From Takakia lepidozioides (Eukaryota > Plantae > Bryophyta), in contig CM060732.1 in the NCBI GenBank assembly GCA_030704615.1, positions 56,854,001 to 56,918,000 of the forward strand: DNA of 64,000 nt, given 5' to 3'. Numbering within the stretch: the stretch's first letter is position 1; every line of letters begins with the position of its first letter. The position numbers were made by a program, and so were the translations under genes. Below are positions 3,601-46,690 of this stretch, piece after piece. The notes beneath the pieces were generated by a model that saw nothing but the letters and a program-made list of their open reading frames with translations, was not told the origin of the DNA and searched no databases.

Positions 3601-3937
3601 AGACAAAGTGCACATGGGAGACATCCTCTTCGTTGGACTTGTGCATTGCATCATTGTGTTCAAAATGGGTTTTTGTCGACTTGTACAGGAGTCCGCGTGC
3701 TTCCAATGACCCTCCAGGGCTATCACACCTATTTGGACTTCTTTCAAGTCCTCCTCGGTCTTACGTGCTACCTGTCTATGCGGAGGCACTCGCAGCAAGC
3801 ATGTCCGTTCATGGCACTCGCAGTCCACCCATCAATGGCCGTGGTAGAAGACGTGGTGTTGGGGCCAGATTCTTATCCAGCTCCCCGTGGCCTACCTTCT
3901 ATGACCTTCCAGCTTAGTCTCGTTTTTGTGCGCTCAG

Positions 3938-5968
3938 TGGCGAAAGCGAAAGCCATAGATGAGTCTTACGTGATGACCGAACTCAATCTGGGAACGCAAA
4001 ACCATATCATAGATCTTACAGAAGAGTCTGAGGAAGCAATTGCCGGTGGGTCTTCCATACATGTTCTTGATGTTTCCCAAGTCCATGGAGATCCGAACAC
4101 CCAGCCGGCTGTCCACCAGACTGACCAGCACACTGAACAGTGGACACATGGAAGGACTGCCGAGCAACCTGTGGCGGGGCAGCATATTGTCTTCATTGAT
4201 GAGCAGACTGAACCGCAGACTAACCAGCAGACTGCACAGGTCACAGATGGAAGGACTGACCAGGATGGCTCGGAGCGGCAGACTGCACAGCTCAGCTCTG
4301 ACTGCACAGTTCAGACTGCACGACTTGACCAGCACACTGCACACTTCACAAAGGGAAGGACTGACGACCAACCTACCACCGAGCACATTGCCCACATTGA
4401 GGAAGAGACTGAACCGCATAGTTGCCAGCAGTGTAAACAAACCTGCTGACCAGCCTCTGTTGCGAAATAGGGCGGCAGCGCTGCATTTGTCTGCTCTATC
4501 CAGCCCGCCTACAGCTATCCCTGCTTCCCAGGGGAGAGGCAAAGCCAAGAAGTGGACTGTCGTGGACCGTCATGGACCATGCTGAGGAGGTCGAGGATGG
4601 GTCCGAGTACCAAGAGACCGGCGAAGAAAAAGTCTGGCGTCTTTATGAACAAAAACCGCAAGCTGGCCTTGGACATGGACAAAGATGTGGGTCGTTTCTT
4701 AGAGCAGCATAGGTGAGTACTGTGCTCAGTCTCCTCGTCTGTCTTTGTCGTTAAGTGTTTTGCGCTCTGTTGTGGTCAGTCTGCACGTTGGTCAGTCTGC
4801 TGCTGGTTTCATCATCGTCTGTTGTGGTTAGTCTTGTCAGTCTGATGAATTGTTCAGCCTGTAGAGTGTTTGGTACCATGTTGACGTCAGTCTATTCAGT
4901 ACATGAGGCTTCCCGAAGGATGGTCTGCTCTGTGCAAGATGGGTGCTCGGTTTGGCAAAGCACATGCTCTGCACGTGAAGGCGGGTAATTCCATGCTGAT
5001 GTTTTTTGAAGGGGACCCACGGTTTGAATGCGGACTGTCGCCGGATGACATAAAGGCACTCCAGAAGGTTGAGTCGGAGTGCACATATAGACTCCTGGAG
5101 CTATGGTGTCGATTATATGAGAAGTCGGTTGAGGCTGCGTTCACCAACACTATTGTTGTTCTTCCAACGTCGACGTGGACGGAGTTGAAGTCATTGGGGG
5201 TGGGGGCAACATGAAAGCCTTCTGGAGGTCTTGAAAGGTTGCCTCAGCACTGAACGACTGGGCAAGGATTTGAAAGAGTGCGATTTCATTTTGGTGCCAA
5301 TTGGGGACGAGTAAGAACTCTTCCGAGTCTGCTGAGACTGTCTCATGAGTCATAGTCTGGTTTCGCAGTGTCGTCTTAACTCTGAGCGATTAAGTTGACC
5401 TCTGTATTTGTGCAGTGGACTGGGTTTGAAGATTGAGTCTGCTGAGTGCTGAGTCTGCTGAGTGGTCGGTCTGCTGAGTGTCAGTCTGCTGAGTCTGCCC
5501 ATCATGATTGTGCAATGACACCATGTTGTTTGATACCATTGCAGGGGGCACTGGAGGGTTTGTATCATCGACCTCCGCAAGGGCTGTTACACTCACCTGA
5601 ACTCTATCAGGGACTCGCATAAATGTCCTTTTGTTCTAGGGTGGATTCGGAAGCTTCATGCTGAGTGCTTAGGGTACTCGATGGACTCACCAGAGTGGCA
5701 TGAGATTGTCCAAGCATTTCAGTTCCACGCGCCTGATGTGCCCCAGCAACCATTCAGCTGGGAGTGTGGCTTTTACGTCATGTCATTCATTCAAGTGTTT
5801 TGTGAGTGGGTAAAAGTCAGAGCAAATGTCTCCAAGAATGCAAAGCCAGAGAGAGGAACACCTTTCACGAAGGACTGGTTTACTTTCAAGTTTGCACTTG
5901 GGCAGCGAATGCAGTGCGCCCAGTATATCGTGCGGGGGTTGGACAATGTAGAGAAACTGCTCTCATGA
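3938..5968 (+). pseudogene. TE-borne Ulp1/peptidase C48 (SUMO-protease-like) gene, 3' portion, disrupted
   Basis: A Q/T-rich low-complexity exon (~3938-4712) is followed by an exon (~4900-5270) ending DFILVPIGD|gtaag. The last exon, 5545-5968, reads GHWRVCIIDL...HLNS...VPQQPFSWECGFYVMSF, giving the His, Asn (for Asp), oxyanion Gln and Cys of C48 proteases. In-frame stop at 4447 and a frameshift near 5210. Confidence 0.75.
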
Positions 5969-6591
5969 GTATGATGTACTTGTCCTGTGAAGTCTATGTA
6001 CCGAAATAAAAATTGCGAGTCTTTTCGCTTACTATTCCAGTGGTGATGAGCACTTTTGTGTACTGTGGGTACTGGCATGTTTTGTAATGTTGTCACTAAA
6101 CTCAATGGACACAATGGTGTCAATTTTTCCATGCACTATGCACCCGAGTCTGCTGAGCTTGAATGTGCGAGCAGTACGCTGCCGAGGCTAGGACTGGTGG
6201 GTCTGGTACCTAGTCTGGTAGGCACCATGTCTATGAGTCCGCTGGGACGCTGGATTGGCATGAGTCGTTAGGGAGGTAGTCCACTGGAGCCTGTCCATTT
6301 TGAGTCTGCTGTTGTGGATGAGTCTGCTTGAGACTTAGTTTGTCCAGTAGTCTGGTGGAAGAGTTGCAGGGATGAGGTGGAAGTGTGGTGAGCAGACTTT
6401 TGGAGTGGGCAGCAGACTGACCAGCAGACTGGCTTACTGGCGCTCGCAGTCTGTTGACTGTGACTCTGTTGGGAGACTGCGTGAGTCCGTTGGGAGACTA
6501 TGCTTGGGAGACTGTGTGGGAGTCCGTTGGGAGACTGTGCATTAGTCCATTGCGGACTTGTATTTCAGAAAGGGACAATGCTACCAGAGGA

Positions 6592-6721
6592 ATTGCAGAC
6601 TTATATTGTCTTCTCCGTGACACCTACACGACGTGAAACCTTGTCTCTTTTCGAGGCATTGCAGACTTATATTGTCTTCTTCGTGACATCTACACGACCT
6701 GAAACCTTGCGAATTTTCGAG
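6592..6721. repeat. 66-bp tandem duplication at the transposase 3' end
   Basis: attgcagacttatattgtcttct(c/t)cgtgaca(c/t)ctacacgac(g/c)tgaaaccttg... starts at 6592 and again at 6658. Confidence 0.9.
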
Positions 6722-9700
6722 TATATATGTGTTGCAGGTGCAGGTGCAGACACCCTCTTGCTGGTTCTCCACAAAACCCTAGGCCGGGTTTTCCAGGCCT
6801 CCACGAAATCTCGTCTCCTTTTCAGAGACATGTTGTTGTTGTGGTTCAGAGGACGGAAAGCCTTCGCTGCCGCAGGGTGCAACATTCCAGCCGCACTTTT
6901 CGCCAGGATATCAACGAGCTGCCCTCTGCACATATGAAGAGCAGATCGGGCATGTGCCTCCAGGTATTTGTCATCACCTACAATGCGAAGTATGTCCGCG
7001 AATTCTTGTTCCATTGAGGCTGAGACCTCCAGAGGTGCCTCGTCGTAGGGGAAGTCATCCAGAGGATGTCTTTCCATGAACTGATTGGATTCGTCGTTGC
7101 CGCCGGCACCATTGCCCAAGAGCAAGTTAGGTAATCCTCCATGAATGGTTCCCAGCGCCGTGCCACAAGCGCGCACAAGGAGGCCATCCTGCAGGTCAGG
7201 GTGAAGCATCTTCAGGACACGGACCCGATGCTTGCATAAGTTTCCCTTCATTGCCTATGGGCACGTGCAACAACCCCAATCGCAATCAAGATTGTAAACA
7301 ATGTATGTTGTGCTGGGGTGGTTGCTGCTGAGAACATAGGCTGGTTCATCAGGACCCAAGGGAAGAGTAACACTCTCAGCAGGAATGTCTCGTGCCGCAA
7401 GTATAGAACTGGATATGTACTTTTCGTGTTTGTCATTTCTTATGAACCCGTGGGTCTTCAAATGGATTGCGTACCAGTAGTGTGTTAGCACACGGCCAGT
7501 GAGTTCCCATATAAGCCAGTCCACTCTACGACCACTCATCTTGCCTTTCCCCATGGCAAGTCTTGCCTTCAGATTTACATGGTATGCCTCAATGCTTGCG
7601 TTTGTGTCTTGGCTCGCATGAGGGACATGGCGGGCTGCTGTACACCACATTGCTATTTTGGGCTTCCAGTACTGTTCGATATAGTCAAGAAATTCATGTC
7701 CTTTCGGGTATTTTGACCTCATACGACGGATTCTCCTTGCCACCCACCGAAGCGTTTTTTTCTCGTTGCGTGGTCCTCCTCTACAGTACATGAGGTCTCC
7801 CATATCCTTCAACAAGTTTACAACGGTCACCGGATCCTTCGTTTTCTTGCATGATTGCTTCACCCATGCCTTGCGGACATGCCAAAGGCAGAGGAAAATG
7901 AGTACTCCTTCAAAAACAATTCTACACAACACACATGGTACACATTAGAGTCTTAGGATCGGACTGCAATGGTGGACTGCCGGAGTGGACTGTAATAACG
8001 ACGTGTATCAGCGGGCAGAGCCACTGGACTCGCCCAGTGGACAGTACAATGCCATGACGTCGATGTGCTGGAATAACCCCATTGGACTACCCAGTGGACT
8101 TCCCCATTGGACTTCCCCTAGCTAGGACTGGGGCAGCGAACTGCATTAGCGGACTGCCGAGCGGACTTGCCGGGGACTGCCAGCGGACTTGCCAGCGGAC
8201 TGATGAGCGGACTTGACAGCGGACTACCAGTGGATTTGCCCAGCGAACTGCCATCGGATTTCGCCACAGGAGTCTGCCAGTGGACTGTAGCAATGGACTG
8301 CTGCAGTGGACCTCGACAATGGACCGGTGTTGTGGACCAACAGACTTACCGAATAGCGTTGATTTCCACTTCGGCATCGTCCACAATGAAGGCATTGGGT
8401 CGCCAGCTCGGCAAATCTGCGAGGAGTGAATCGTGCAAGGCTCTCATCCACGGAACCAGGTCTCTTGTCCGATTCCTTGCGGATAGGATATAGACAACTG
8501 GTATACCGTTCAACCACTCGTCGAAGACCATCAACGTGTACAATGGGAACTGTTGGAATGCACAATGTAAGGTGGTCAGAGCATGCAAATTCTGCTCAGT
8601 TCTGCACGAGAAGACTTCATAAGAGTGATGAGGTCTGTAGCGGTTCACAATGGGTCTGCCTCTCGGTCTTCCGCAACGTACACAACCCTAAACATACAGA
8701 AAGGGTCAGCACACCAAATATTATGTGAATGTTGCATGGTACTATGCTATCATGCTCGTATAAGTCCATGGAATCGTTCGAATAGTACCTTGTCATAATT
8801 TGTCCCAAAGGTTGCATCACATGCAACGATACGGTCATATCCTAGTTCCAGCATTCGTCGTTTCTGCCACGGAGTCTGTATGCCAATAGTGAATGTCAAA
8901 TCTCCATCAAAATGCTCGAATATTGGCTCTAATTTCTCCTCTTGATAGAAAAAAATGGACGCAGGATTCTGGTCTCTCTACATGCACACACTCTCTGCAT
9001 CATCGGCGTGTTTTTTGAAGGTTTGCCACGCACGTTTCTCGGCAAGGTTGCGAACATCTTGCTCCAACAAGAAATCATCGCGGGTCCATGCATCGCCCAA
9101 GCCGGTGTTGTTCATCACGTGCTCTTTATGCTCCATCATGATTTGGGCGACCGACAGGCCTCGGCACAAACACTCGACGACCCAGGCTTTCAATTCCTCG
9201 CTAATGTGTGGTGCATAGGCGTGGCGGGTGTTCCTGAACTCTGTGGACTTCCCATGCGAGGGTTTCCCTTGCGCATCTGTATGCTCCATGTTGTTGTAGT
9301 ACGTGAGGACACAGATGTCAGGGGCGAGATAGCATTGTTGGACCTTGAAAGAGCATTGGCAACCACGTTTGTAAGACTCTCCATACTCCGACTTCTTTCT
9401 CCTTGGGCCTTTATGAGGGCAAGATGCTCCAGCACCCACAAGAGGTCCTCCACGCTTTTGTTTTGGATCCTCCACTATTGCCTTGTTGGTGCGCTTGTCA
9501 TCAGGACCGTAGCAGCATTGATACCTGGACAGAAAATTCTAAAATCGATATCCAACGACTTGAAGAAGCATAAAATCAGAGAACTCGTGAAACAAAAAAT
9601 GGCAACAGACATGTAATGAAACGTCAAAATGACTGAGGATGGTGCACACATAATACTGGATAGAAATGTGTTGGCTCTGGGTGCTTTTCGAGAGCCGGGT

Positions 9701-9972
9701 TCCACTTTAGAATGGACATTCACCCAAAACTGAGTGGGGTAGTTCTCCAAACTCTCCTCTCCCAGGACAAAGTCACCAACTCTATCCCAAGGTATGCAGT
9801 CCTTTTCAACATTCACTCGCACACCCATAAACCCATATTGCGTCTCACTCTTCCAATTGAGATCCTTCCTATTGAAGGGTCCTGGTTTTGTTGTTTGCAA
9901 ACATTGTCGAAGAGGCCGTATAAGCGGGCTTTCCGTGATCAGTATATCATCGGGTTTTGCTTCCACGTCCAT
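6667..9972 (-). pseudogene. MULE DDE transposase with SWIM zinc finger, 4 exons, two in-frame stops
   Basis: Exons 9972-9650, 9524-8789, 8549-8350 and 7921-6667 with GT-AG introns. Motifs: CCYGPDD, KRGCQCSF..HTDAQGKPSHG, D1 in CDATFGTN, D2 in FIVDDA, CLWH, E in TNASIEAYH, and SWIM CTCP*AMKGNLCKH. TAG stops at 8978-8980 and 7255-7257. Confidence 0.9.
7961..8345. repeat. GGACT motif array filling transposase intron 3
   Basis: About 17 exact GGACT plus single-mismatch variants, spaced mostly 11-12 nt in the core (e.g. agcggactgccg agcggacttgcc ggggactgcc agcggacttgcc agcggactgatg). Confidence 0.9.
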
Positions 9973-10116
9973 GCCCTATACAGTACAAAGGACACGCTTT
10001 TGAACATGCAAGAAACGCGCCGGAGTACAGGACACGATCGACAACGTGCCAGGAGAACAGTGCGCACGTTCGCGGCTGCTGGCAAGTGGCAGGCGGCAGG
10101 GATGCAGGTTTGAATT

Positions 10117-10523
10117 GCAGCCCTAAAAATGGAGGGCTCGGATGGGTTATGGGAATGGACGGTGGCGATCATGCGCCGTCAGCGGATTGGATGGCAGGGG
10201 ACTGGCGGACTGGCAGACTGCTGGGCAGCGGACTGGCCAGCAGCGGACTGGCGGGCAGACTGGCGGACTAGCAGACAGCTGGGCAGCCGACTGGCCAGCA
10301 GCGGACTGGCAGACTGGAGGGCAGCGGACTCATGGCCGGGGGACTGGCCGCGCGGCGGACGGGGGCGCGGGCGCGGTTGCTGCAGCCGCGCCCGCGGCTA
10401 GGCGACCGCGCGCAGCGGCGGGCGGGGCGGGCGGGGTGCTGGGGAGCCGGGCGTCCGTGCGCGGGGCCCACCGGCCACATCGCACGTGCCCATTGAAGAC
10501 CCTATTATCTTAAAATGAGAGGC
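10117..10523. repeat. Long GC-rich terminal repeat (TIR) of the MULE, copy A
   Basis: Near-identical to 24939-25317, from gcagccctaaaaatggagggctcgg to cttaaaatgagag(g/a)c. Contains (C/A)GACTGG sub-repeats. Confidence 0.92.
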
Positions 10524-11049
10524 GAGAAAAAGTCTGTTGAATTTCAGTAATTGCATGGAGACGGTGGTGATCATTGTTATATTTGATATTCGCTATTTTC
10601 CATGCACACTTCTTTGGCCGAATGAAATTGTACGGATGGGAAGACAGGATCTCCTGAGGTGCATGAGGTCGCTTCAGCGAGACACTTGGAGCTCTCTTCC
10701 AACCCAACTTACAGATGCAAACTGCAACGGAGTTGAAAAGAAGAAACTATCCTCAGGTTCCCTCAAAGAAGAATTGAGAAACCGACAGGAAGGGCAGGAG
10801 CAACAGCGAGAGAACAAAATGCAGAGAAGACAACAAGAAGCCCCCCACTAAAACTTAGCACGCTCAAGTCACTTTGCTAATTTGTTACGCATCCTCATCG
10901 ACTATTATTACCCTCGCCCACTAGTTTTGCTAATCCGCTAATGTGCAGTATAGGTAAGTTGGTGTTTACACTTTGCATTGCACTGCTCAGAAATTTGTGA
11001 AGGTAATTTTGATACAAGGTTACTTATTTATTGTTGTTGTGACTACCTG

Positions 11050-12140
11050 CGCATCAGTGTCAAAAATCGCTAATAAGCCCTCATGTGCCTTCCCCATGGG
11101 GTAGCTCCTGTGCCTCTCCTTTGCTTCTAATACCTCCTCAGATAACATCTTTCTTATTGAAAAAATTACGAAAAATAAATGGATGAATTTCAGGTTTATT
11201 ATGGATGAAAGTATATTTCACTATTCGCAAAGAGGAGCCATATGTGTCTAAGTTAGCCACTTGTTCAGTGACAATCTTCAAAAAATCGGCAGAGGAGCTA
11301 GACAACATAGTTCACGGCGATACCAAATGCTATAGAAAGGGGATTTTTGCTATAAAACTCACAATTAAGGAGGTACAACGATCTTTGCCCATTATGCCCG
11401 ATTCATCCGATACCAACGATGATATCGCCTAGTTTGGTTGTCCATCCACCTTCCACTATCGTGGACTCTATCGACCTGGATCCTGTCATCTCAGTTGCGA
11501 TACCCCAATCCAGAACGGAGCCAGTCCAGCGGAGAAATAAAGGGAAGTAAACTGGTCCGAAAATGGGCAATGACAAGATAGGACACCCCAAGGGGTCTCG
11601 ACGGAGAAGGGTCATGGCACTGACTAAGGGCTTGGTTCATTATGATATACTTAAAGACCTGGACACGTTGCAACCTGCTATTTCTTTGCGGCAGCTGTTG
11701 GCTATCGCACCTCAATGCCGGGCTTCTTTGCAGTCATCTCTAGTGCGGAAACAGGCAACAAATAACGACGTCCATGAAGTGAGTATATCCTCACTCAATC
11801 CGGATCCAGGTGCCCCCGTCCTAGATGTGACAATAGATGGCGTTGTTATTATTTTGGGGGGGGGTTAAAAGGGGACAGAGGCCCCAATTTATTGGCTCGT
11901 TTTTATTCTAAAGAGAAGACTACGCATCTGTGTCAAAAATCGCTAAGCCCATGTTTACCCAAGCATCACCTCCTCTCCTTTGCTGGAAACTCGTTCATGA
12001 TGTGGCTTCTCCAAGTAATACCTCTCTTAGGTTATATCTTTGGTATTGAACAACTTATGCGAAATAAATGGATGAACTTTCAAGTTTATTATGGATGAAA
12101 GTAGATTTCATTATTCACAAAGAGGAGCCATATGCGACTA
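11050..12140. repeat. Diverged ~200-bp direct repeat pair (11050-11250 and 11923-12140)
   Basis: Both copies share cgcatc(a/t)gtgtcaaaaatcgctaa and aaataaatggatgaa..tttattatggatgaaagta(t/g)atttca(c/t)tattc(g/a)caaagaggagccatatg. Confidence 0.85.
11400..11850 (+). mobile_element. Ty3/gypsy gag-protease junction fragment
   Basis: YDILKDLDTLQPAISLRQLLAIAPQCRASL...APVLDVTIDG resembles the segment just upstream of the aspartic protease in Ty3-type elements. It is truncated at a G-run before the catalytic D. Confidence 0.55.
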
Positions 12141-12689
12141 GCCGCTTGTTAAGAGAGGAGAGGGAAAAATAACCTATAAGAACCATAAAGGACAACAAGC
12201 AAAGGGGCAGCCACCTGAGATCCACCCGATCCCGAAAAGCCAGACATGGCCAGCAACCGAAGAACTAGTATAAGGGGCAGATCCCTTAATAGCAAACAAC
12301 AGAGCCTGTAGAAGAATTCATTTGTAGGTGCAACAGAAACTAAAACATGAGCCCAAGCCACCGTACGCTTGCTCCTCAACATTTTCAAAATTGAGATATG
12401 CATTGAGCCCGGGGCCGCGGTCCTTCTTATGACGCCAATTGATATCGTCGTCTTCCCCTTGAGTAGGCAGGGACCACATCTCAAGTGATCTGCCAACAAC
12501 TAGGGAGATCTCGGATCCAGCACGTGCCTCCTTCAACAAACCCATATTAATAGATGATTTGTCTCCAGCCCCACAGCAGTCGAATTGAGAAATGAGAGAT
12601 GGTTGTTTGTCTTCAGAGCATCTGCATAGAGCTAATTTCTGCACCCCCCACGCTTTCACACCCTCTATATTAGTAAATCGTTGTAGATA

Positions 12690-12900
12690 CGTTGAAGAGT
12701 TGCTAGTGCAGGTAGCAAAATGACATTGGAAAAAACAATGTTCAATGGATTTTTTATATCTATCATCACATAAAGCACAAAGAGATGGAGGGTCACGGTA
12801 TTGCCCCATGGGGAGGATCTTATGACATAGCCTCCATAAGAAACTCACAATCTTAGATGCTTTGATGCAAGAGAGCCAGACTTCCTTCCACAAGTCTTTC
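12690..12900 (-). mobile_element. LINE (L1-type) ORF2 fragment, zf-RVT domain
   Basis: WKEVW..KIVSFLWRLCHKILPMG..CALCDD..KSIEHCFFQCHFA matches the C-x2-C..H-x4-C zinc-binding region of plant L1 ORF2. Confidence 0.8.
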
Positions 12901-13129
12901 TAGGCAAAACTGGAATGAAAATTTGGCCATTCACGCAGCCACTTGTTCCTCTGAGAGGAACTATCCAAAAGGAGCGAGTAACTGTGAGAGCTCATCAGAT
13001 TATCATTGATTCCGTTTGTAGTCATCATGGCAAAAATCATCTTTTAATTGATTCAATGTTGGTCTTTGTTGTCATTAGCATTGTATGCCATACAACCTCA
13101 CACATGTGTAAGTCGATTTAGCATTGATA

Positions 13130-15660
13130 ACAAACAGCCCAAGAATGTATCTGTTAATTGTTTGTTGGAGCATTAGTGAAGGTGATAAATAGATGCACTC
13201 TCAAAAATATTGGATGGCGTTAACTTCTCATGGATGAAGTGATAACGAATGTCAATATGCTTCGTGTGAGTATGATCAATTGGATTCTTAATCGAGTGCA
13301 GCCTTCATTGTTAGCAAACAATGTAGCGGGTGCAACTTGGGGAAAACCAATTCCGTATATGAAACTTCGCAGCTATATTGCATGTTTAGTAGAGTTGATT
13401 GCAACAATGTACTCAACCTCTTTGCTCAATAGAGCAACCGTTAATTGTTTGCCACTATTCCAACTAATTGCGCCTAAGATGGATCATTTGTCATCCATGT
13501 TGCGGCTTCTCCATGTGGCCTACCCAGTCTACATCAGTATATCCTTATATTTGAAGCTAGAAAACTCAAGTGTAGGCTAAAAGCCAGTTTGAGCTCTTGC
13601 ATGCAGTCTGGCAGCTTCTCTAGAACAGATAAGTTTGCCAACATCTTCAGTGACTCATTTTTGTACGCACCTTGAAGGTTCATTTCTGGAAGGTCAATAA
13701 GGCCTCGAACCTTCCCACCTGAAGAAAGATCATTTTGTCACCACTTGCTCAATAGCGGTGCTAAACATGTGAGCAACACTATTCCGATCACTTTTGCAAA
13801 AGTAGGTCACATATTGAATCAATTCTTGACGAAGGTCATGCGCCGCTTTATTGCGATCTTCATCCTCTTTTCCCAGAGTGGTCAGACACCTCCGAGTTAG
13901 GTCATCAATATATGAGAGTTCAGCTTGAGATAAACCGTAACTGAACCACCCCGCTTCCCAAACAGATCTATCATCTGTCAAACCTTGCCTATGATGGTAC
14001 TCTCACAGCAGCGTATTATATGACATGTGCTCCATATCCTTGGCAAATACAGGAAGATAACTTGTGATGCCATCATTAAGACTTCTGTACTGTGCCTCGG
14101 AGCGGTGCATGAGAAAGGTGAGTCTCATGAGGAGAGACCCTGTGAGAATGTAGCTTAATGGTTGTAGCATTTTCTTTAAGGTCGGTGCATAAGTCATCAC
14201 ATATGATGATTAGGTCATCTACATATACAGCTATAATGATTACAAGTTTTTCCTGAAGTGTGAAAACACAAGGATCTGAGGTGCTTTGCTTGAAACCTTC
14301 GTACTTTGTCAATTTAAAGTACCAAACTTTGGACCCTTGTTTAAGCCCCTATAATGCCTTTTTTAACAAGCAAAACTGATCATCTTTACCTTCAACTATG
14401 AAATCTAATGGTTGCTTTATCAAATTTGACGCCGAAACCCTCGCCATGAGGTCGCACCATGATGTCCGGGTCCCGCACATCCCCGTGGACAGACCCTGCA
14501 TTCGGTAAATCGAACACACGTAACCTGTGAACCTTTTCCAATGCCTCTCTCACAGCCAATGAGCTCTTCTCTTGATCTCGCGTTGTTCCAACGATACGAG
14601 TGTTTTGCCATGGAAACCCCAAATATTCCATTGCAATCATTTTGAAACCCCCTGGTAGTTCCTTTACATCCAGTAATTCTGGTGCAAAGCCTACGCTGTA
14701 CCACGCTTGGTGCACCTAGAAAAATCAAATTTTTCTTCTTCCATATGTCCATTCAAAAATGCCTTTTTGACATCAAATAAGTGCACCTCAAAATCTCGGA
14801 TGGTTCAACGGCAAGTAAGATTCAAATAGTATCAAATCTGACTACTGGAGCGAAAATCTTTGAATAATCAATATCTTTGTTTTGAGAGCCACCAGCCTCG
14901 CCTTGTACTTCACAACTCCTCCATCATCATTTCTCTTGATTTTGTAAACCCATTTGCACCCCATATGGAGTCTCCTCTTAGATAGATTAGCCAGGACCCA
15001 CGCCCGTTCTCCTTCAAGAAATCCAGCTTATCTTATATTGTCGTCTCCCATTAGTGAGAATTTCCTTCTTCAACTACCTCATATAGAATATGTGGCTGAT
15101 CATTTGTATATGCAAGTTTAAATCCATGCACAGAAATTTGAGAATTGTATTTTACAAATGGTCTTAACAATGGAGTTTATCTCCTGAGTGGTATAGGGTT
15201 TTGGGGATCCTAAGGGAACTAATTTGCTACTGAATCATCAAATGAGGCGTTGATTACATCTAACGTCTTGTCAACATTTGGATGAGATACACACCATCGA
15301 TGATGTCACTATGCAATATGGGAGCATCATCATGGAAAGTTTGACATTCTTCCACCTAAGGAATGACAATCATATTGTTGTCTCCCGCTTCGTTGCACAT
15401 TAGGCCCTTAATTGCTATAATATACATGTTTGGCATGTTCATTGTAAACGAACCCAAGCAGTATGCACTTGTCAGCCTTGGAATCGAGTTTATCTCGTTG
15501 TTCTTTAGGCATTAGAACAAAAGTTATGTTGTCATATGAAGCTCTGATCAAAATATCTAGTCTTTTGACCCACTCTATGCTTCCGCTGGTGTAATGTCAC
15601 AAAACAATGAAATATCACTGACATTCTGGAGGTAGTTTGCTGTCACAACTAGTTAATCAT
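13130..15660 (-). mobile_element. Degenerate Ty1/copia pol (integrase end, RT, RNase H) interrupted by two foreign inserts
   Basis: Motifs in order: VTANYLQN (~15640), PKEQRDKLDSKADKCILLG (~15490), GCKWVYKIKR..VKYKARLV (~14930), DVKKAFLNG (~14760), L*GLKQ, SDPCVF..YVDDLII (14200-14312), GYTDVDW..GAISW..VALLSKEVEY (13400-13545) and TKHIDIRYHFI (~13250). Confidence 0.9.
14428..14723 (-). pseudogene. Protein-kinase-like gene fragment inserted into copia RT
   Basis: GFAPELL..PGGFKMIAMEYL...VHGDVRDPDIMV..VKFD spans the kinase hinge and catalytic loop. It is flanked by ATCAAATTT at 14419-14427 and 14724-14732. Confidence 0.7.
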
Positions 15661-16334: not shown

Positions 16335-17829
16335 GTGAATGCGATTCGGCGCATGCATCTGTTCATGTGGAATAGCAATTCGGCCCACCTGCCAGAGGTA
16401 AGTTGGTCGGGTGGGGAGTCTGGCCTGAATCTGCCTTTTGAAGATGAGGCAGACCCGATTGACTTTTTCAATTTGTTTTGGCCAGTCTCTATCATGCGGA
16501 GAATATGTGCAATGACCAACCTGTATGCAAGGACATTGAATTCGAATGGAAATCTGAAAGGGGGTAGATGGTGGTACCCGCTTACAGTTCGTGAATTGAG
16601 GGCCTGGATTGCTGTTCATATTCTTATGGGCATCAAGAAATTTCCTAATACTAGGCTGTACTGGAAGCACAATGATAGTTTCTTCAATTGCCCTTCTATA
16701 ATTCGCATCATGTTGCGCAACCGGTGGGAGAGCATCTTGAGATGCCTCCACCTTGTTGACAACAGAGATGTGGTCACTGATCCAAACGAGCCAGCATTTG
16801 ATAAGCTAGCGAAAACCCGTTGGCTTATAGATGCCCAAAATGACTGAACAGAACCTGTGTGTGGATGAGCAAATGGTGAAGTATAAAGGGAGGTATGCTC
16901 GAATTCAGCAGTACATGGCGAAGAAGCCTGTGAAGTGGGGCATAAAGTCATGGTGCTTGTGTGGGGCAACTTCTAAGTATGTTCACAAACTGGAGGTGTA
17001 TCTAGGGAAGGATGAGGGAAATGATTTGACGCATGGGTCTGGATATGGAGTTGTCACAAGGCTACTGGCCAGATTTGAAGGGAAGGGTCATATAGTAACT
17101 ATGGATAACTTCTTCAGTAGCCCTCTTCTTTTCTATGACTTGGCAGCCAAGTCCATCTTTGCTACTGGCACAGTAAAAACAGCAAGGGTGGGGTTTCCTT
17201 CTTGTCTTGATTTGGGAAAAAATGGTGAGAGGGGAAGGCTGGAATGGCGCATGCACATATCTGGTAAGTTGGCGGCCGTTTCATGGATGGACAGGAAAAT
17301 GGTGACCCTCTTGAGTACTGCCATCTCCCCTGTTGGTGAGGATTGTTCCATTGAAAGAAGACATGAGGGGGCTAGACGCCTTGTGCCAACCTCCCCCATA
17401 GTGGTGCACTATCAGCACCACATGCGGGGGGTGCATGTGCAGGACCAACTACGTGGCTACTATTCAGTTCAGACCCGTGACCACAAGTGGTGGCACAGGC
17501 TGTACTTCCACTCCGTGGACACCTCTTTGGTCCATTCTTATATTTTATACTTGGGCTGGATGGCAGCAAAGGGCCAGACGCCTCGTAGCCACATGCTATA
17601 CAGTTTAGCTATAGCTAAAGGACTAACGGAGGGGTGGGTTGCTCCCAGGAGAACAGTGATGCCAGGCTCAGACGTGCCCAACCCGGGTGCAGTTCACTTT
17701 TTCCTCAGAAGTAGTAGGAGGAGGAAGTGTGTTGAATGCGGTGTTCGCCAGAGGTACTTCTGTGCAATGTGTGGAGATCTTCCCATGTGCCTTGGACGTT
17801 GTTTTGTGCGGAGCCATAGCCTTCTGTGA
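16335..17829 (+). pseudogene. piggyBac transposase, frameshifted
   Basis: PIDFFNLFW..TNLYA..ELRAWIAVHILMG..YW..RWESILRCLHL..DKLAKTRWL, then a frameshift or deletion at ~16840. Continues VDEQMVKYKGR..KPVKWGIK, MDNFFSS, GTVK, WMD, MRGVHVQDQ (third catalytic D appears as H), KWW and the Cys-rich tail CVEC..CAMC..C..CF..H. In-frame TGA at 16332-16334. Confidence 0.93.
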
Positions 17830-18777
17830 TGCATGTGAGTGGCTGGTGGTTCACTAAACATTCTGATTGATTGCTCCTGTAGAGACGTGGAGACTCTTCC
17901 GAAAGGTGGAGTGTCCATGGGCTGGGTTGTGGCCTTGTGTTTGTTCCTCAACACTCTAACGTGCTTGGGGGTAAGTGCTTTCATGCTAGTTTTGAGCTTG
18001 AAGAGGTTTTACTAACTACTTTAGTGTAGGGAGTCGCTTGACAAGTCCTAGGATAGTGGGTCAATGGTGTGTGGGAAGTCTATGGTCACTTCCTAATGCG
18101 CAGGTGTATGTCTTGGCTGGTGCAGCACTCCGAGATCTGGTTATGGGTGCAGCCAGCTCCTGTGTGGTAGTTTTGTGATATGCCAATTTTGCGTGCAGGG
18201 TTTTGAGTGTTCTAGGCTGTAGTGGCAATTGTGCTTGGATTTTTGGTGACTGATCAGTTCGTAGTTAGTACTGCTGCAACAGAACATAACCAGCTCTGGT
18301 AGTATGATGCTAGTTTAGTCCTTGCCATAGTGTAGTGTGGAGGAGGCATAGTTGCATGTTCAGGTCTTGCTACAGGCATTTGTTATGAAAAGACTAAGTT
18401 GCCTTCATGTTCAGCGGGTGTCTGTGGTAGAGCAGGTTAGTGGTTAGTCCCCTTGTCAAGCGGGCGTGCACACAAGGGGGGGATCCTCCCCCTTGTGTTC
18501 ATGTGCAAGCTGCCAGTTGGGGCAGGTTACTGGGTTCAATTCCCACTCACACAATTGTAGGGCTATGTGCTTGGATGGGTGGGATTGTGGAATCTGTTTT
18601 ATGCTCGATGTTGCACATTGCTCAAGCCTACTGTAGCAATCACACGGGGGGACTTGCTGTATGTAAACCATGATTGGTTTTGCTGTACACCCTCAAGTAC
18701 AAAGCACCTGTCAAGTGGACAGCCTTTTCAATTCAGTAATCAGTGTTGTTTTGGGTAGCCCTCTTGCTGCAGTACTG

Positions 18778-18871
18778 TGGTCATTTTATGTGTGAAGGTC
18801 TACAGCCCTGTTGGTCATGGTTGATGGTCATTTTATGTGTGGAGGTCTACAGCCCTGTTGGTCATGGTTGA
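18778..18871. repeat. 47-bp tandem duplication in the piggyBac 3' region
   Basis: tggtcattttatgtgtg(a/g)aggtctacagccctgttggtcatggttga occurs twice. Confidence 0.92.
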
Positions 18872-19879
18872 AGGGTGCTCCTGCAAACATACACCAAACA
18901 AACACCAGGGCACGACTCAGGAAACAAAGGGAGCTACATGCAGGACTTTGTCATTTTTGCAGCACCCCAAATTCTCAAAATCTGACCCCCTCACATTTGA
19001 CCAGGTGTCAACACCACGATTTTTGTCCAAATCACTTTTTTCTTTTTGGGCTGGATGGAAGGACCCACCAGGATGAACATGGAGCAGTTTCAGCCCATTT
19101 GGTTTTCATCCCATCATTCAATTTTGCACTGGCGTAGAAAGTAAATGTAATTTTGTTGAGTGGGGTCCATTTTTGGACCCCACATTCAACAGTGGCGTTT
19201 TGGCGATCTCGCTCTGATTGGCCTCAAATTTGGTGTGTCCCTGCACGAGGTAGGTACACACCTAATGTGCAGTCAAAATCTTAAATTTTTTTGTTTTCAA
19301 GATTTTCTGAGATTTTTCCTGCGCAGGGGTCTTGTGACCGGCGATCAATTTTTCAAACTATGAAATGCTCTTTCCACTGCAAACAATTTCTCTTACTGAT
19401 TTCTTGAAACATACCCACTTACCAAAAGAGGGAGGCCTGAGACTTCTGGTCAGCTGAAAACAAAAAATCCATCCTCTCTAAAACCATATAATCTCCCATA
19501 TTTCACGGTGAAACAAGTTCATTTTGGTGAATGCAAGCAGGTACCAGGTGGGCACCTATGTATAAGGTTCATTTTTCTGGATGATCTTTGATAGATAGTT
19601 AGCCTCATTTTAGTGAGCATGGGTAGTAATTTTTAGGTGTCAAAAATTGAACCATGTAGGAAGTTAACCCCTAAAGGACGACGCGACCCGAATCGGGTCC
19701 CATTAGTTTTTTACCAGGCTCCAATTTGATAGTGGATAATAGTGGATGGAAGTGAACCCTCAAGATAAATTGTGGATGTCAGAGAGGAGCACGTGTGGGA
19801 ATTTACTGCACACCAAAAAATCATAAAGGCTCTGCTCCCTAGAATTTTTAGAAGTGCCAAGGGGTCAGAAAATCCAGTG

Positions 19880-22800
19880 TTAGAGCACCATTGACCTGCC
19901 TACGTGGCAGCCAAATGGGTCGTCGTCAGTGAATGTGCCTGGGGGAAAAGTGGACTCGGTCAAAACACTCATACTGGCAGATCCAAAAACATGTTGTTGG
20001 GAACTCAGCAGAAATTCGTCCACAGGGTCCCGGTGAGGCCAGTGCATCCGAGTCTGTTGCACAATCCAGGGAACAGACTGGCTGTTAGTCTCCTGGATAG
20101 TCTACTCGACCATCTGCTGAGTGGGTTCGCCAGTGTGCTCCACAGTCTGCTGAGGGGCAATCTGCTGGCTGGATTCGTCGGTCTGCTGTACAGTCTGCTG
20201 AGGGGCAGTCTGGTGGCCATGTTTGCTGGTCTGCTGCACAGTCGGCTGAGGGGCAGTCTGTTGGCCGGTCTGTTCTCCGGTCTGCTGCAAAGTCTGCAAA
20301 GTTCGCTGCCCGCTCAGTTCTGTTTGCACATACTGAGTATGTGTGTGCGGGGCAGTCTGCTGGGAGTGATCCGACCTATTACCCGGGACGGTCTGGTGCA
20401 CATGCTCGGTCTCCAGCACTTGGGCAGTCTGCCCACATGTGTCGTGGGGAATATGTTGTTTGACATTCTTGTGGCCAGTCTGCTGGATAGTCTCTCGAAC
20501 TCCTTGTAAAGCCAGGACAAGGTCCCTTGCACCTCTGGCAAAAGAGTCGAAAGCAGCCTGCACTTGCTTGTCTCCCAGATCAACTCGCCCTGCAACACAT
20601 GTTTATGCAAATGTGAACTTGTAAAAAAGTTGGCAAAAGAAATTGAGCTGAAACACGAAAGTTGCCCATAACATTTTACCTTCTAAGAGATTTCCGACGA
20701 GGCCAATGTCCTTGATTTGCCAGCACAGGCATGCTCCATCGAGATGAGCAATGGCGCCGATGCGGTCTTCAGTTGAGATCCCACACCACAGGACTTTGAA
20801 GACATTGGGATTCTGCAAAACAATGTCGAATACTGCTCGCTCCATCACCAATGCAAACCAGTGCAATGCGTCATCCACCACAAACTTCTGTGAATGGTCT
20901 GTTCCATGGAGTAAGTCCATCCTCAAACTATGCAGATCCTTCATCAACTTGTTGTATGAGCGGAAATTGTCAAATTGCATCCATCTGTGTTGTAGGAAGG
21001 AAGCTGCCATACGCTCAAAGTCCTCCTCAGTCAATCCGAACAAGTGCTTTCTTCGCACCCCAAAGGTTGGATGTGCCGGCATATGTCTGGGGTCTTCAGG
21101 CCGTGGGTCATCCATGAGAATCAGCTGCACAAGTAGAGGCGGCGCATTTTGGTCGCTTGTGGCTTCAATGGCAACAGCAGAGGCGGCTTTTAGAACATGG
21201 TTGGCTTCCTCAATAGAAAACTCCATGGAATAATGAAAGGGTACAAATGACCACCGGCGGTCCGCAACAATCCGGTGGAGCTCATTATGCCAATCCAAAT
21301 GGGGATTAATTTCTCCCACCCTAAGCCGGGGAAGTGTGAGGTCTTCAGCTCCGGGTCGAATTACCGGTGATGGCGATCGCCAAACTGCAAAAAACGCCGT
21401 GCTATGTGAGAGAAAGGCAGTCTGCTGGTCAGTCTGCTGGTCCGAAGTCTATTGGATGACAGGACTTCCCATTGGCATGGGCTGCATGATGGGCTCCTGG
21501 AGAGGAGTCTGCAGGATGACGGGCTGCTCGTTGGGAGTCTGCTCCGTTGGAGTCTGCTGGATGACAGGCTGCTGAACGGGAGTCTGCTGGATGACGGCCT
21601 GCTGAATGGGAGTCTGCTGGATGGCAGACTCGGCTGTCCCAAACGCATTCCCCCCTGACACATCTTGAATATGTAACGCCGCTATAGCAGCAGATGACCC
21701 ATGATACTTCAATAATATGTACTCTCGCACGCGGTCCACTTCCGCACGCACTGCAGTCGCTTGTAAAGGAGCATCATTGCTAGGTATCCGCCAAGCCTGA
21801 ATGGCCCTACGAATAGAAACACGTTCATCCTGGTACACGACATAGTACTTGGACGTCGGGAACATGGACGTGGACTCTATATTCACCTCATGCAGCGGAC
21901 TGGACTCACAGACCAGCAGACTGTAACGTGCGTATGTAGGGTGGAGGCAACTAGTAGACTATACCAGTGGACTGGACCAGCGGACTGACAAACGTACTCA
22001 GTAAGTAATGCAGCGATATAAAACAGACTAACTGACGAGCGGAGTGAGCCAGCGGACTGAGGAGAGAACGCAGCGGACTGACCAGACTGAATAGGCAATG
22101 TGACCCCCCGATGATGGACTCAAACAACACAGAGAACAGACTGGGCGGTCAGACTGACCATTACCTCCACTTCATCATTGTCATCTTCATCTTCAAAGCT
22201 GTTCAACCAGTTCTGTTCCGCCTGTCGGATGAATGTGCGTAGCAGACTTGATTGGGCAACTCTGTAGAAATAACGGAAGAAGTCTGGATCCCCAATTGGT
22301 GGGCACTCTGGTGGGAAAAGCCCAAAGTCAACGAGGCGCAATGTGCCAGGGCAGACTGGCCCTTCAGTGCTCTGTTGAGTTTTTGGTTTTGACCCTAAAC
22401 CGATGGCATGGGTCGCGATATTTGTGTAAGTCTATTGCCGAGTCTGGTCAGGCAAGTCAATGTCCACTGGACTTGTCACCCCTTCCAGGCCCTAAGCAGA
22501 TTCACTTTCAGTATCAGTACTGATGGTGTGGGTCTGCCGCCCAGGACGGGGTTAAGTCTGTTGCGTGGATTTTGCCCTTGCCTCGCGAGCAGACCTTGCA
22601 GCCTTCTCTTTTTTTTGCCTCTTCTTCTTTTGGGCCCCATCACTCAGTTTACGTTTTCCGGGAGCGTCCGGCGTTCCCTGCACTTGCAAATCCTCCATTG
22701 ACGGGCCACCACAATGGACGCCATACCGTGCGCGCACTTCGTCTAATTCCAAAGTGCGGGGATCAAGCACTGATCCGCGCAAGCGCATTGTGGCCTCTTT

Positions 22801-23100
22801 GACAATCAACATTTCTTTCAGTATCGGCCAAGGCTTGAAATCCCGTGGAATCATTGTAACAGTCTCCTTGCAACCCGTGTCAACACAATGCCGATTTAGT
22901 TGGATTTTGTCCTTGATAACCTCTTTACAGAAGGGACAGAAGAGCTTGTCCTTCTGCCAATTCGAGTTTTTGGGCTTCCGGGCGCGGAGGTCTACAAATG
23001 CTTCCACTATTTTATGATCAAACTCGTCTGGTGAGTACCAGTACCTTCGCTCCTTCTTCAGTCTGGTTTGGTGCACAAAATCCACCCAGTCCGCTCCACC
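19880..23100 (-). pseudogene. Multi-exon TE accessory gene(s) of unknown function with putative C2HC zinc finger and Q/T-rich tracts
   Basis: Co-oriented ORF segments 22552-23085 (FCPFCKEVIKDKIQLNRHCVDTGC and a basic NLS-like KRK..KKKRQKK), 22120-22341, 21449-21886, 20603-21319, 20102-20563 and 19880-20062. They are separated by intron-like stretches and a few stops. Confidence 0.55.
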
Positions 23101-24938
23101 TTCTGCAGAATGAAACGAAGGTGCAAGGACAATGAGCGACAGATAGAAGTCCTATGAAAAGACTCACCTTAAGCAAGAAGAGGACATAGAATGGAATGGA
23201 AACACCGCAGCAAGTGAGAACCTCACTGAGCCGATGAACTTCGAGTTGTTACGAAGGCGAGCGTGTTTGCGACGCTTCGCGGCTCACCGCGACTCTCCAC
23301 ACCTGGGGAAGAACGGTCGTCTTTCGTTACGGTGATGGAAACGCAAAGAGAAAAACAAAACAGTGCAAAACAGTGCGAAGAAACAGGCACGAAGAGAATG
23401 GAGTCGATCGCACAGGGAACATGAGAAGAAAGTAGAAGTAGAAGGGGGAAAGCGGGCATGGCACTGCCAACGTGCCGCGATTTCACAGGCACCAACTATC
23501 CGCCGTCATCGCATTGAATACGTCCACCGAACGAACGCATCGTACTAAATTCATCCACAGTCATCGCAAGTGCAGCAGACTCATTTCCCATCGGGCCGAG
23601 AGTCCACCGGACCGCCAGTCCAGCTCCCAGCACTCCAGCTTTCAGGCTGTAGGACTGGCATGGCCCTGCGCACAGTCCGGGCGAACTGGGGGGCCTGTGA
23701 AGCTCCTTGCGGACTATTCGCTTTGCTGAGGCGAAGCGGCTTCATATTGGAGGCACTTCCCTGCCAACGGAATGAAGACAAAAGAGAGTAAGGGGAGAAC
23801 AGAAAAGTCGAACACACCCATTGCGAACAGACTCGCGGCACAACAGACTGATGCATGCACAATCCAACAGACTGATATCCATAGAGGAGAACTGTCCAGC
23901 AGACGGACGTTTCGGCAGACTGGCAGGAGAACAAACCAAAAGACTGACCGGAGGGAAATAAGAAGTCAAACAAACTTAGTGCAACAGACTTCCGACACAA
24001 CAGACTGACAAATTCACAAGTGCGACAGACTGATATCCCAACAGACGGACTTCCAGCAGACCGCCTCCAAACTGACTGTTATGCACGCGATAAGGGGAAT
24101 ATCCGGAGCACTGACGGGCCAGCGGACCCACTGTGAACAGACTCGCGACACAACGGACCTCAAACATCCACGCGCATTTGCAGATGCAATTGTCTCAGCC
24201 TGGTCCGTCTCCTGGCAAATGCGACAATGTACCGATTCTGCACCTACTCCCGTCGTGGCTCAGACATCTGCATTCAGCAGGTGCGTGTGGATGTTTGAGG
24301 ACCTTACGACTGGATGGTGTTCCTTGACGACTCGAATTGTTTTTTTGTGCTGCCATCCCTTATATAATACCATGTGGATCCATCACAAAGCCGGGTTTCT
24401 TCAGATTCTCCACCCTTTTCCACAACTTATGCACGACGGATGCAAGCCGCTATACTTGGTCACATAAACAGTCCCATCGTCCGATACAAAATCTGCAATA
24501 CACGCCCCCATGTGCATACGTTTCCACCATTTTCGCGCCCATGTTACCCATGGGTTCCTTTAACGAACTAAACTTGTGAAGGCTCTCATGAGGGATGCAG
24601 TATGAAGGGGCTAAACGTATTATGACGGATCACAAGCAGAGGACGTTATCGACCACAGATGTCCACATTTTCCATATTTATGACATAGAACCAAACCATA
24701 AAACGAAGGTTCCCGAAAGCACAACAAGAAGACAAAAATAGTGGAAGCATATGTACGATGGTGGCTGTAGTGCCCATACAGTCTTCTCATGTTCAAGCAC
24801 ACGCTTCATCATCATCATGAACATCGTGCGCAAAAAAGGAACAGTCGCGTGCATGGAAACGCCTACCGCAAAATCGGACAACAAACAGCCGTCAAAAGAG
24901 AGCGGCCGGGATTTGGTGGGAAGATCATTGCCATTTTC

Positions 24939-25317
24939 GCAGCCCTAAAAATGGAGGGCTCGGATGGGTTATGGGAATGGACGGTGGCGATCCTGCGCCG
25001 TCAGCGGACTGGATGGCAGGGGACTGGCCAGCGGACTGGCGGGCAGACCGGCGGACTGGCAGACTGGAGGGCAGCCGACTGGCCAGCAGCGGACTGGCAG
25101 ACTGGAGGGCAGCGGACTCATGGGCGGGGGACTGGCCGCGCGGCGGACGGGGGCGCGGGCGCGGTTGCTGCAGCCGCGCCCGCGGCTGGGCGACCGCGCG
25201 CAGCGGGGGGGGGGGGCGGGGCGGGCGGGGTGCTGGGGAGCCGGGCGTCCGTGCGCGGGGCCCACCGGCCACATCTCACGTGCCCATTGAAGACCTTATT
25301 ATCTTAAAATGAGAGAC
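24939..25317. repeat. Long GC-rich terminal repeat (TIR) of the MULE, copy B
   Basis: Same sequence and same orientation as 10117-10523, but with different internal flanking DNA. Confidence 0.92.
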
Positions 25318-26199
25318 CTTTTTCTCAGGATTCTGTGGCCTATTATTACTCACTGTGAAGATGTTCGAGCGAGATGCAGAATTGACACCCAAGAAGATCT
25401 CATCGCCATTACTGCATTACAGTTCTAAAGAGTTGTGAAGGACTACTTCGGATTGTTATGGTAGGGGAAGCGGTTTGCATGCTGGGAATGGGAGTAAAGT
25501 GAAATGATGAGTGACCAATTTTCGTATTTGTTCGATTGCAGCAATCTTTGTTCGTTTATTGCTATTTTAAACGGGCTGATCGCTTTTGTGTCTGCTATCT
25601 GAAATTTGTCGCCTTTCTTTGCAAATCACTTTGGGTTTGGAGAGACAGGAGACTCCGGCTGAAGCCGGCATAAATTTCCCCTAGAAAGCTAGGGTACTGC
25701 CCCGGTTGTGGTTGGGGTTGGGGTTGGATTCTATTTGGGTTTGGACACTTAGGCCAAAGGCAGTCCAAGTCTTGTTGGAACTGTCCTTCTGCCTTGGGGG
25801 ACCTTTTAGGAGGTCCCATTGTTACTGAAGTTGGCGAGTGATTTCGTGATGTGGTTAGGGTTTGATATCATTGTCCAAATGGAAACCTGAGGCTGAAAGG
25901 GTCCGTCCTACTATTCCACAACTTGAGCTGGAAAGGGAGTGATATTTAATTCATGAAATGATAGCATCCGGGTTTGAGGTTGCAAGTCCCTTTCCCGCTT
26001 TGAGCAAGCAAGAGGCAAGGTGCCTTATTTGGCCTTTATGAACATACAATATGTATACCAACCGAGAAATATCTCTGTTATATTCCTTTGTCTGACCCCA
26101 AAGTCTCATGAAGTGTGCATGGTTAGGACAAGAACACTCATCTGTTACTCCCACTACAGGATCACACCGAGTTTCCAGTCACTGCCAATTTTACCAGGT

Positions 26200-46612: not shown

Positions 46613-46690
46613 GCACAATTCGCATTCCTTCCCCAGTTAAACCCATGCAATGCACAATTCGCATTCCTTCCCCAGTTAAACCCATGCAAT
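46613..46690. repeat. 39-bp tandem duplication (adjacent to a 13-bp duplication)
   Basis: gcacaattcgcattccttccccagttaaacccatgcaat occurs twice; tactatgtttcca occurs twice just upstream. Confidence 0.92.

Follow-up and report, generated by a model that had tools for sequence, protein, structure and literature searches.

A MULE in Takakia lepidozioides probably divided by an inversion that followed its insertion

The 64-kb stretch of Takakia lepidozioides DNA analysed here (hereafter, the window) probably holds one MULE insertion that was later cut through its helper gene by one inversion. An earlier note on this DNA had traced two element ends to a single insertion event, and that reading is supported by matching 9-mers beside the termini, the lack of partner ends, and the complementary content of the two halves. 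In this study, we describe the termini, the two halves, and the breakpoints, and then weigh the other ways in which this arrangement could have arisen.

Terminal repeats

The following two repeats were found at the ends of the halves.

10117-10523 (+): terminal repeat 1, 407 bp, terminus at 10523, with many GGACTGGC/CAGACTG sub-repeats
24939-25317 (+): terminal repeat 2, 379 bp, terminus at 25317, oriented as repeat 1

In self-blastn, 10117-10521 and 24939-25315 aligned in the same orientation at 88% across 411 columns (E 2e-125). The MAFFT alignment, with a mean column identity of 91% over the aligned stretch including flanks, placed the mismatch chiefly in two indels, of 34 bp and of 6 bp (a G run). 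Both repeats were GC-rich. Similarity ended abruptly on the inner side (10116/10117 and 24938/24939) and also on the outer side (10523 and 25317); the abrupt loss on the inner side gives the two repeats different internal neighbours. These results confirm the earlier description of ~400-bp terminal repeats that point the same way and are unlike in their inner neighbours. The repeats are direct as the sequence stands, and become inverted only once the inferred inversion is undone.

A search of both strands of the 64-kb window that tolerated 2 mismatches or fewer located the 17-nt terminus at these two sites alone (expected 0.01), and no third terminus on either strand. Self-blastn revealed no inverted copy of the terminal repeat in the 64 kb. 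An inverted partner for each TIR, an observation that would have counted against the reading of the earlier note, was found in the window for neither repeat by either search.

Target-site duplication

Each terminus is followed directly by one 9-mer.

10524-10532 (+): target-site duplication copy GAGAAAAAG, abutting repeat 1
25318-25326 (+): target-site duplication copy CTTTTTCTC, abutting repeat 2

One 9-mer is the exact reverse complement of the other (9/9 positions), as had been noted earlier, and each occurs once in the window. The match covers exactly 9 bp and extends not one base further on either side; its empirical chance for a fixed position pair was 6e-6. A 9-bp duplication falls within the MULE criterion of 8-11 bp, and its reverse-complement form fits one flipped end. 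Reading outward from the ends, reverse-complementary 9-mers at both termini are what one insertion predicts.

The empty site that had been predicted, ...ACAGAATCCT-GAGAAAAAG-TCTGTTGAATTT..., was correct as written. The TIR terminus and the predicted empty site each had 0 matches in the JGI metagenomes, a collection without plant genomes in which this result is uninformative. Neither at the empty site nor at the outer junction after rebuilding was any usable restored gene or repeat found.

Left body: transposase and protease

The left body (about 3.6-10.1 kb) contains two convergent genes, whose proteins were searched exon by exon.

6676-9975 (-): broken gene for a MULE (MURA-like) transposase, directed inward from the 10.5-kb end
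3921-6000 (+): 3' half of the helper gene, with QTD/QQT repeats, a basic stretch, and C48 exons

The transposase exon at 7258-7944 (-) had 534 phmmer matches. PF10551 MULE was present in the full-length matches P0006 and P0044 (44-59 bits; cutoff, 27.6), just upstream of the part aligned to the window exon, and tblastn placed residues 16-721 of P0006 on 9526-6676. Pfam gave no significant match for the window's own transposase exon pieces; hence, the MULE identity rests on homologues. Homology of the exons at 9.9-6.7 kb (-) to full-length PF10551 transposases supports this gene as a MULE transposase, and is in line with the earlier classification of the element as a MULE.

In-frame stops were located at 8978-8980 and 7255-7257, the latter inside a CxC...CxH SWIM-like motif recognized by eye (~7270-7220, -). 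The same positions are read through in three relatives (L003-L005). Pfam yielded no SWIM match in the transposase exon pieces; the homologues matched the ZSWIM1-3 RNaseH-like family PF21056. The closest transposase relatives with DNA (L002-L006) showed 32-49% amino acid identity and had the transposase alone in common; their convergent ORFs had no significant similarity to the protease or to the right-half ORFs.

The helper half begins with word-coded QTD/QQT repeats (4.1-4.45 kb, frame A), followed by a basic stretch (4471-4713) that resembles, by eye, a nuclear-localisation signal, and by Ulp1/SUMO-protease C48 exons (4885-5311 and 5534-5965). Pfam Peptidase_C48 matched 5534-5965 (+) over profile positions 95-187 of 217 (E 2.5e-11, 44.3 bits; cutoff, 20.7). 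The frames of the upstream C48-like exon (4885-5311) were read by eye.

Right body: putative 5' half of the helper gene

The right body was delineated from ORFs and their translations.

19951-24938 (-): helper gene, 5' half, with the region upstream

It includes a zinc-finger-like ORF (22555-23151, -) with weak C2H2/Di19 matches (E ~0.1), an unnamed domain (20606-21448, -), and QQT word-coded repeats at 21.45-21.62 and 20.1-20.3 kb. In-frame stops occur at 21449-21451 and 20102-20104. With 20606-21448 (-) as the protein query, one Logan contig was retrieved (L001, from SRR15431198). This contig represents another family copy, 96.7% identical to 20462-23302; it reads through the 21449 stop and ends at window position 20462, 550 bp short of the internal junction.

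Complementarity of the two halves

Short words set the two halves apart from the rest of the window. GCGGACTG was observed 16 times against 1.18 expected, always within 5.0-10.3 and 21.9-25.1 kb. In the 64-kb window, the CRGACTG word was enriched in the left and right bodies only, and RGACT density was 14.2/kb in the halves versus 3.1/kb outside. Outside the terminal repeats and the short word, self-blastn and local alignment detected no similarity between the halves. They are non-overlapping and complementary in gene content, with the transposase and C48 protease in one and the zinc-finger-like ORF, unnamed domain, and QQT repeats in the other.

Flipping ~3.6/3.9-19.9 kb rebuilds a two-gene element of 12,028-12,329 bp, in agreement with the ~12 kb proposed earlier, and restores inverted termini and a regular 9-bp target duplication. 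It also puts the QQT/QTD repeats from both sides of the junction on one reading strand; the helper gene then runs from the zinc finger through the domain and these repeats to the protease, and converges with the transposase gene. In the intact element, the two halves would probably join at a single point.

Breakpoints

The putative breakpoints and the segment between the right one and repeat 1 are as follows.

3590-3920: left inversion breakpoint zone, between outside DNA and the inner end of the left half; best estimate ~3.6 kb
19883-19950: right inversion breakpoint zone, between inverted flank and the inner end of the right half
10533-19912: former flanking DNA, inverted, ~9.4 kb, with word counts at background level

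On the right, the composition change-point was sharp at 19913; the first RGACT word was at 19952, with zero in 19600-19900, and the helper-gene frame (-) was open down to 19883. On the left, the k-mer log-likelihood change-point was at 3606, RGACT density was 15.5/kb in 3590-3912 versus 1.7/kb in 3000-3589, and the helper-gene frame was open from 3589. From this composition, the left breakpoint more likely lies at ~3.59-3.64 kb than at 3913, within a range of 3.59-3.92 kb (~330 bp). Of the inverted segment proposed earlier (~3.9-19.9 kb), the right end therefore stands, and the left end was probably placed ~300 bp too far to the right.

Neither breakpoint has inverted repeats or inverted duplications. 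Local alignment of 3500-4300 with 19500-20300 gave a 34-bp inverted word-array match, 85% identical and 200-500 bp off the breakpoints, with a score of 33 against a shuffled maximum of 29. NAHR between inverted repeats is not supported, since this match, away from the breakpoints, is all that was found. The window contains no N bases. Together, the lack of breakpoint repeats and of N makes both recombination and misassembly driven by repeats less likely. Because the breakpoints are free of repeats, end joining is a more likely repair route than repeat recombination.

Two other candidates at the breakpoints were rejected. A degenerate left terminus of the halves' own (GYCTC-RTTTT, at 3914-3933 or 19599-19618) scored 20 in alignment versus 21 +/- 2 for shuffled sequence, and the adjacent 9-mers were unlike either target duplication. 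Ends of piggyBac or other TEs were not recognized, with no TTAA and no matching inverted repeats. The ORFs beside the breakpoints (19895-20506, +, and 3589-4446, +) had no match in protein searches.

Proposed sequence of events

An autonomous-type two-gene MULE of 12.0-12.3 kb would have been inserted by cut-and-paste into the empty site given above, duplicating 9 bp. It would have had ~400-bp inverted ends, an inward transposase gene, and a convergent helper gene encoding the zinc finger, the unnamed domain, and the Ulp1 protease. Later, two double-strand breaks, one in the helper gene and one in the flank ~9.4 kb past one terminus, would have been rejoined with the intervening ~16 kb (~3.6-19.9 kb) flipped. 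The flipped segment would have carried one terminus, the transposase, the protease half, one duplication copy, and 9.4 kb of flank. Such a flip would make the termini point in the same direction and the 9-mers read as reverse complements. We infer the order of insertion and then inversion from this end and duplication signature, which dates the inversion after the insertion. The element is now immobile and dead, because its termini are in direct orientation, the helper gene lies in two pieces, and premature stops interrupt both genes.

Alternative explanations

Direct termini with opposite duplications are common to a flipped single insertion and to a product of reversed-ends (alternative) transposition, and do not discriminate between them. 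In reversed-ends transposition, facing termini would be cut and inserted together at a nearby 9-bp staggered target, flipping 10.5-25.3 kb. Its products bear the signature seen here: direct termini that each abut one reverse-complementary new target duplication, where one of the two elements is enclosed by the inverted segment and the other lies immediately beyond it (PMC8225341). Alternative transposition has also been proposed for the Mutator-superfamily VANDAL21, as has a VANDAL5-linked inversion in Arabidopsis (PMC12312487). However, the route needs two elements, each with its untransposed end in the donor DNA, or a permuted precursor (protease-transposase-end, spacer, end-zinc-finger). 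In the 64-kb window, such a pair was not found; the other end is kept by neither half, and the two bodies complement each other instead of repeating the same content. One would have to assume either two further truncations, at points that match, or a permuted insertion without precedent, which brings the count to at least three events versus two for a single insertion followed by inversion. We thus consider reversed-ends transposition unlikely. Of the two mechanisms that the earlier note had offered, a later inversion is the more economical; reversed-ends transposition would require a circularly permuted or doubly truncated precursor. The broader proposal that the element's own transposition machinery made the inversion, either by reversed ends or by a transposase-induced break at internal word arrays, is similarly doubtful. 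These arrays are similar to the sub-terminal repeats found at the ends, at distances of ~200-500 bp from the breakpoints (~500 bp when the best estimate for the left one is used).

An assembly artefact, in which an intact 12-kb element with inverted ends had ~16 kb flipped by the assembler, would yield just the wholly ordinary structure that is rebuilt here. False inversions, however, usually lie between inverted repeats, and the only candidate is the 34-bp match, barely above the shuffled controls; the window has no gaps, and one breakpoint is in unique flank. This explanation seems improbable. Less credible still are two independent truncated family copies, inserted 15 kb apart in the same orientation, with the 9-mers matching by chance or through target preference. 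The family is multi-copy, as the copy in SRR15431198 shows, and A/T-rich targets are common. Against this, the exact match stands at the precise termini (P ~6e-6 per position pair) with both 9-mers unique in the window, and the truncation points of the two copies would have to be complementary. We regard this possibility as very remote, and retain one insertion followed by one inversion as the probable history.

Comparison with known systems

The maize p1/p2 inversions made by Ac/fAc through reversed ends have direct termini at both junctions, each beside one duplication copy (PMC8225341). The Takakia case resembles them in its direct-oriented termini and in being diagnosed from matching junction duplications (PMC8225341). 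Ac/fAc belongs to the hAT superfamily, makes 8-bp duplications, and involves two elements that each keep the other end, with loss of the spacer (PMC8225341). In contrast, only one element's worth of sequence is present here, and 2/4 junctions are away from any terminus.

As in the paracentric VANDAL5 inversion of the Arabidopsis chromosome 4 knob, a Mutator-superfamily element is found at a plant inversion breakpoint; the VANDAL5 and VANDAL21 cases have breakpoints at element termini, and two nearby copies are invoked (PMC12312487). Unlike those cases, one breakpoint here is inside the element, and nothing points to the transposase as the cause. The VANDAL5-associated knob inversion measures about 1.2 Mb. 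Flowering-plant MULEs that carry Ulp1 (Kaonashi/KI-MULEs, and VANDAL-type elements with accessory genes) have a transposase and a C48 protease within long TIRs. The moss element likewise holds a MULE transposase gene and a C48 protease gene; it differs in that its host is moss-like, that its helper combines a zinc finger, an unnamed domain, and the protease, and that the element as a whole is saturated with its own word.

The case is a tidy but ordinary structural rearrangement, and offers no new transposition biology unless the transposase caused the breaks. If it did, the inversion would represent a MULE-driven rearrangement that is fixed in a bryophyte chromosome and resolved at the sequence level. 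By analogy with Ac/Ds work, the direct-oriented ends could also serve as breakage substrates if active family members supply transposase. Direct ends with reverse-complementary target duplications can make a small fixed inversion detectable from sequence alone. In annotation, what look like two half MULEs and a divided helper gene (zinc finger/protease) should be treated as one dead element, and the inversion provides a structural marker for accession comparison.

Content of the putative inverted flank

In the inverted flank, an exact look-up of the ORF at 10555-10848 (+) found it not on record. A LINE-like zf-RVT remnant was located at 12318-12893 (E 3e-4, below cutoff). The flank also contains a piggyBac-type transposase ORF at 16831-17829, which matched Pfam DDE_Tnp_1_7 (E 1.7e-43).

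Terminal repeats and flanking 9-mers

A strong direct repeat between 10117-10521 and 24939-25315 was identified by a repeat search and self-blastn of the window (88% over 411 gapped columns, E 2e-125). The similarity starts abruptly at 10117 and 24939 and stops at 10523 and 25317, which gives repeat lengths of 407 and 379 bp. The DNA flanking both repeats, on the inner and outer sides, is unrelated between the copies. In the MAFFT alignment, the two copies differ mostly by one 34-bp and one 6-bp indel; averaged over the columns of the aligned stretch with its flanks, identity is 91%. Directly after the termini stand the 9-mers GAGAAAAAG and CTTTTTCTC, which are exact reverse complements of each other. 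The match stops at these nine bases in both directions, neither 9-mer recurs in the 64 kb, and the empirical chance of reverse-complementary 9-mers at two fixed positions is 6e-6. Followed outward from either end, these 9-mers form the footprint expected of a single insertion. These results confirm the direct-oriented ends of ~400 bp with different inner neighbours, and the reverse-complementary 9-mers after them, described in the earlier note. An inverted partner of either end, which that note had regarded as contrary evidence, was looked for in the window: the 17-nt terminus occurs at these two sites only (both strands scanned, up to two mismatches allowed, 0.01 expected), and self-blastn detected no inverted copy of the terminal repeat.

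Word distribution and gene content

The ends contain sub-repeats with the word CRGACTG (GGACTG/CAGACTG), which marks just two territories. GCGGACTG occurs 16 times, versus 1.18 expected, always within 5.0-10.3 kb and 21.9-25.1 kb; the density of the short form RGACT is 14.2/kb in the word territories versus 3.1/kb elsewhere. Beyond the ends and the word, no similarity between the left body (~3.6-10.1 kb) and the right body (19.9-24.9 kb) was detected by self-blastn and local alignment. The features of the two bodies and of the DNA between them are as follows.

Features of the two bodies and the intervening flank
3589-4446, plus strand: frame with QTD/QQT repeats built from the word, upstream of the protease
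4885-5311, plus strand: additional C48-like exon frames beside the Peptidase_C48 match
5534-5965, plus strand: Ulp1 protease (Peptidase_C48, E 2.5e-11), convergent with the transposase
12318-12893, minus strand: weak zf-RVT match (E 3e-4, below cutoff)
16831-17829 (region 16154-17829), plus strand: piggyBac-type transposase ORF, 332 aa (Pfam DDE_Tnp_1_7, E 1.7e-43, profile positions 125-348 of 349)
20.1-20.3 and 21.45-21.62 kb, minus strand: QQT repeats coded by CRGACTG
20606-21448, minus strand: unnamed 281-aa domain (ORF)
22555-23151, minus strand: zinc-finger-like ORF (weak C2H2/Di19 matches)

The transposase and the helper gene (zinc finger, unnamed domain and protease) were searched exon by exon, as unjoined exons. 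Exon 7258-7944 (minus strand) has 534 significant relatives, and in the full-length ones the Pfam domains MULE (PF10551) and ZSWIM RNaseH-like exceed the cutoff. Residues 16-721 of a 730-aa relative map to 9526-6676 on the minus strand (tblastn). The transposase gene is dead. In-frame stops interrupt it at 8978-8980 and 7255-7257, the latter within a CxC...CxH SWIM-like motif; relatives lack a stop at either position. In the right body, contig L001 (Logan, SRR15431198) provides a second copy, 96.7% identical to 20462-23302, which reads through the window copy's stop at 21449-21451 and ends 550 bp from the junction. CRGACTG also serves as coding sequence: QQT/QTD peptide repeats of the helper gene lie in 4103-4446 (plus strand), 20105-20313 and 21452-21620 (both minus strand), on both sides of the junction.

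Breakpoints and the intervening flank

The right breakpoint is sharp, with a composition change-point at 19913, no RGACT in 19600-19900 and the first word at 19952. The left one is fuzzy. The earlier note had placed the inversion at ~3.9-19.9 kb; its right bound holds, but its left bound, 3913, is probably ~300 bp too far right, because the change-point lies at 3606, 3590-3912 has element-like RGACT density (5 words versus ~1 expected), and the open helper frame reaches back to 3589. The inversion is thus probably ~16.0-16.3 kb in size. The breakpoints lack inverted repeats, inverted duplications and TE ends, which makes end joining after two breaks more likely than recombination between repeats. 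Homologue searches found no relatives on record for the ORFs adjoining the breakpoints. An exact look-up of a flank ORF (10555-10848, plus strand) and scans of JGI metagenomes for the terminus and the predicted empty site gave no match, which carries no weight because this plant is absent from those collections.

From 10533 to 19.9 kb, word density is at background, and the repeats present are of unrelated kinds. The ends and TTAA of the piggyBac-type element at 16154-17829 were not located. The zf-RVT match suggests a LINE remnant; a pair of 119-bp direct repeats (11128-11244 and 12016-12134, 86% identical, spaced 890 bp) adjoins it.

Reconstruction and alternative explanations

When the ~3.6/3.9-19.9 kb flip is undone, the ends become inverted, the 9-mers become a direct duplication, and every word-coded repeat falls on one strand. 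The rebuilt order is end, zinc finger, domain, repeats, junction, repeats, protease, convergent transposase and other end, totalling 12,028-12,329 bp. One MULE insertion would have come first, and the later inversion of this segment would have cut the helper gene in two. We consider this sequence of events the probable explanation, and the single split insertion proposed in the earlier note stands on the reverse-complementary 9-mers, the complementary bodies and the lack of another end in the window.

Reversed-ends transposition could have produced the inversion directly, since its products show this signature of termini and duplication too, as maize Ac/fAc demonstrates (PMC8225341), and alternative transposition has been proposed for VANDAL elements of the Mutator superfamily (PMC12312487). 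However, the facing ends in that route belong to two elements, and each of these retains its other end. In the window the halves complement one another and both lack a second end; the starting structure would have been either one element in circular permutation or a pair of copies with truncations at corresponding points. We regard it as unlikely, and insertion followed by inversion is preferred because it takes fewer events. An assembly artefact is similarly improbable: without repeats at the breakpoints, repeat-driven misassembly is unlikely, and the window contains no N. Two unrelated truncated copies whose 9-mers match by chance would be a most improbable coincidence.

As an event, the splitting of a dead MULE by a small inversion is ordinary. 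The split element helps annotation and can serve as a structural marker; its family, saturated with the word and equipped with a zinc-finger/protease helper, is a more interesting subject than the inversion.

Relatives and other repeats

Five transposase relatives with DNA (L002-L006) have the transposase alone in common with the window element. L002, from the Logan run that also holds the 96.7% copy (SRR15431198), represents a second MULE family, its transposase being 43-49% identical to the window exons. L003 (8.3-15.5 kb), L004 and L005, from ENA metagenome assemblies ERZ24794498, ERZ24794430 and ERZ24794432, contain one and the same 443-aa MULE transposase ORF, with ~41-44% identity to that of the window; their convergent ORFs of 476 and 304 aa, which have no Pfam matches, also agree between the three contigs. 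Their MULE was recently active in some eukaryote of those samples.

Short tandem duplications lie at 18778-18871 (47 bp x2, 98%), 41990-42313 (163 bp x2, 97%) and 46613-46692 (41 bp x2, 100%). A ~283-bp unit is repeated at 26208-27223, with an inverted copy, 80-82% identical, at 47806-48001.
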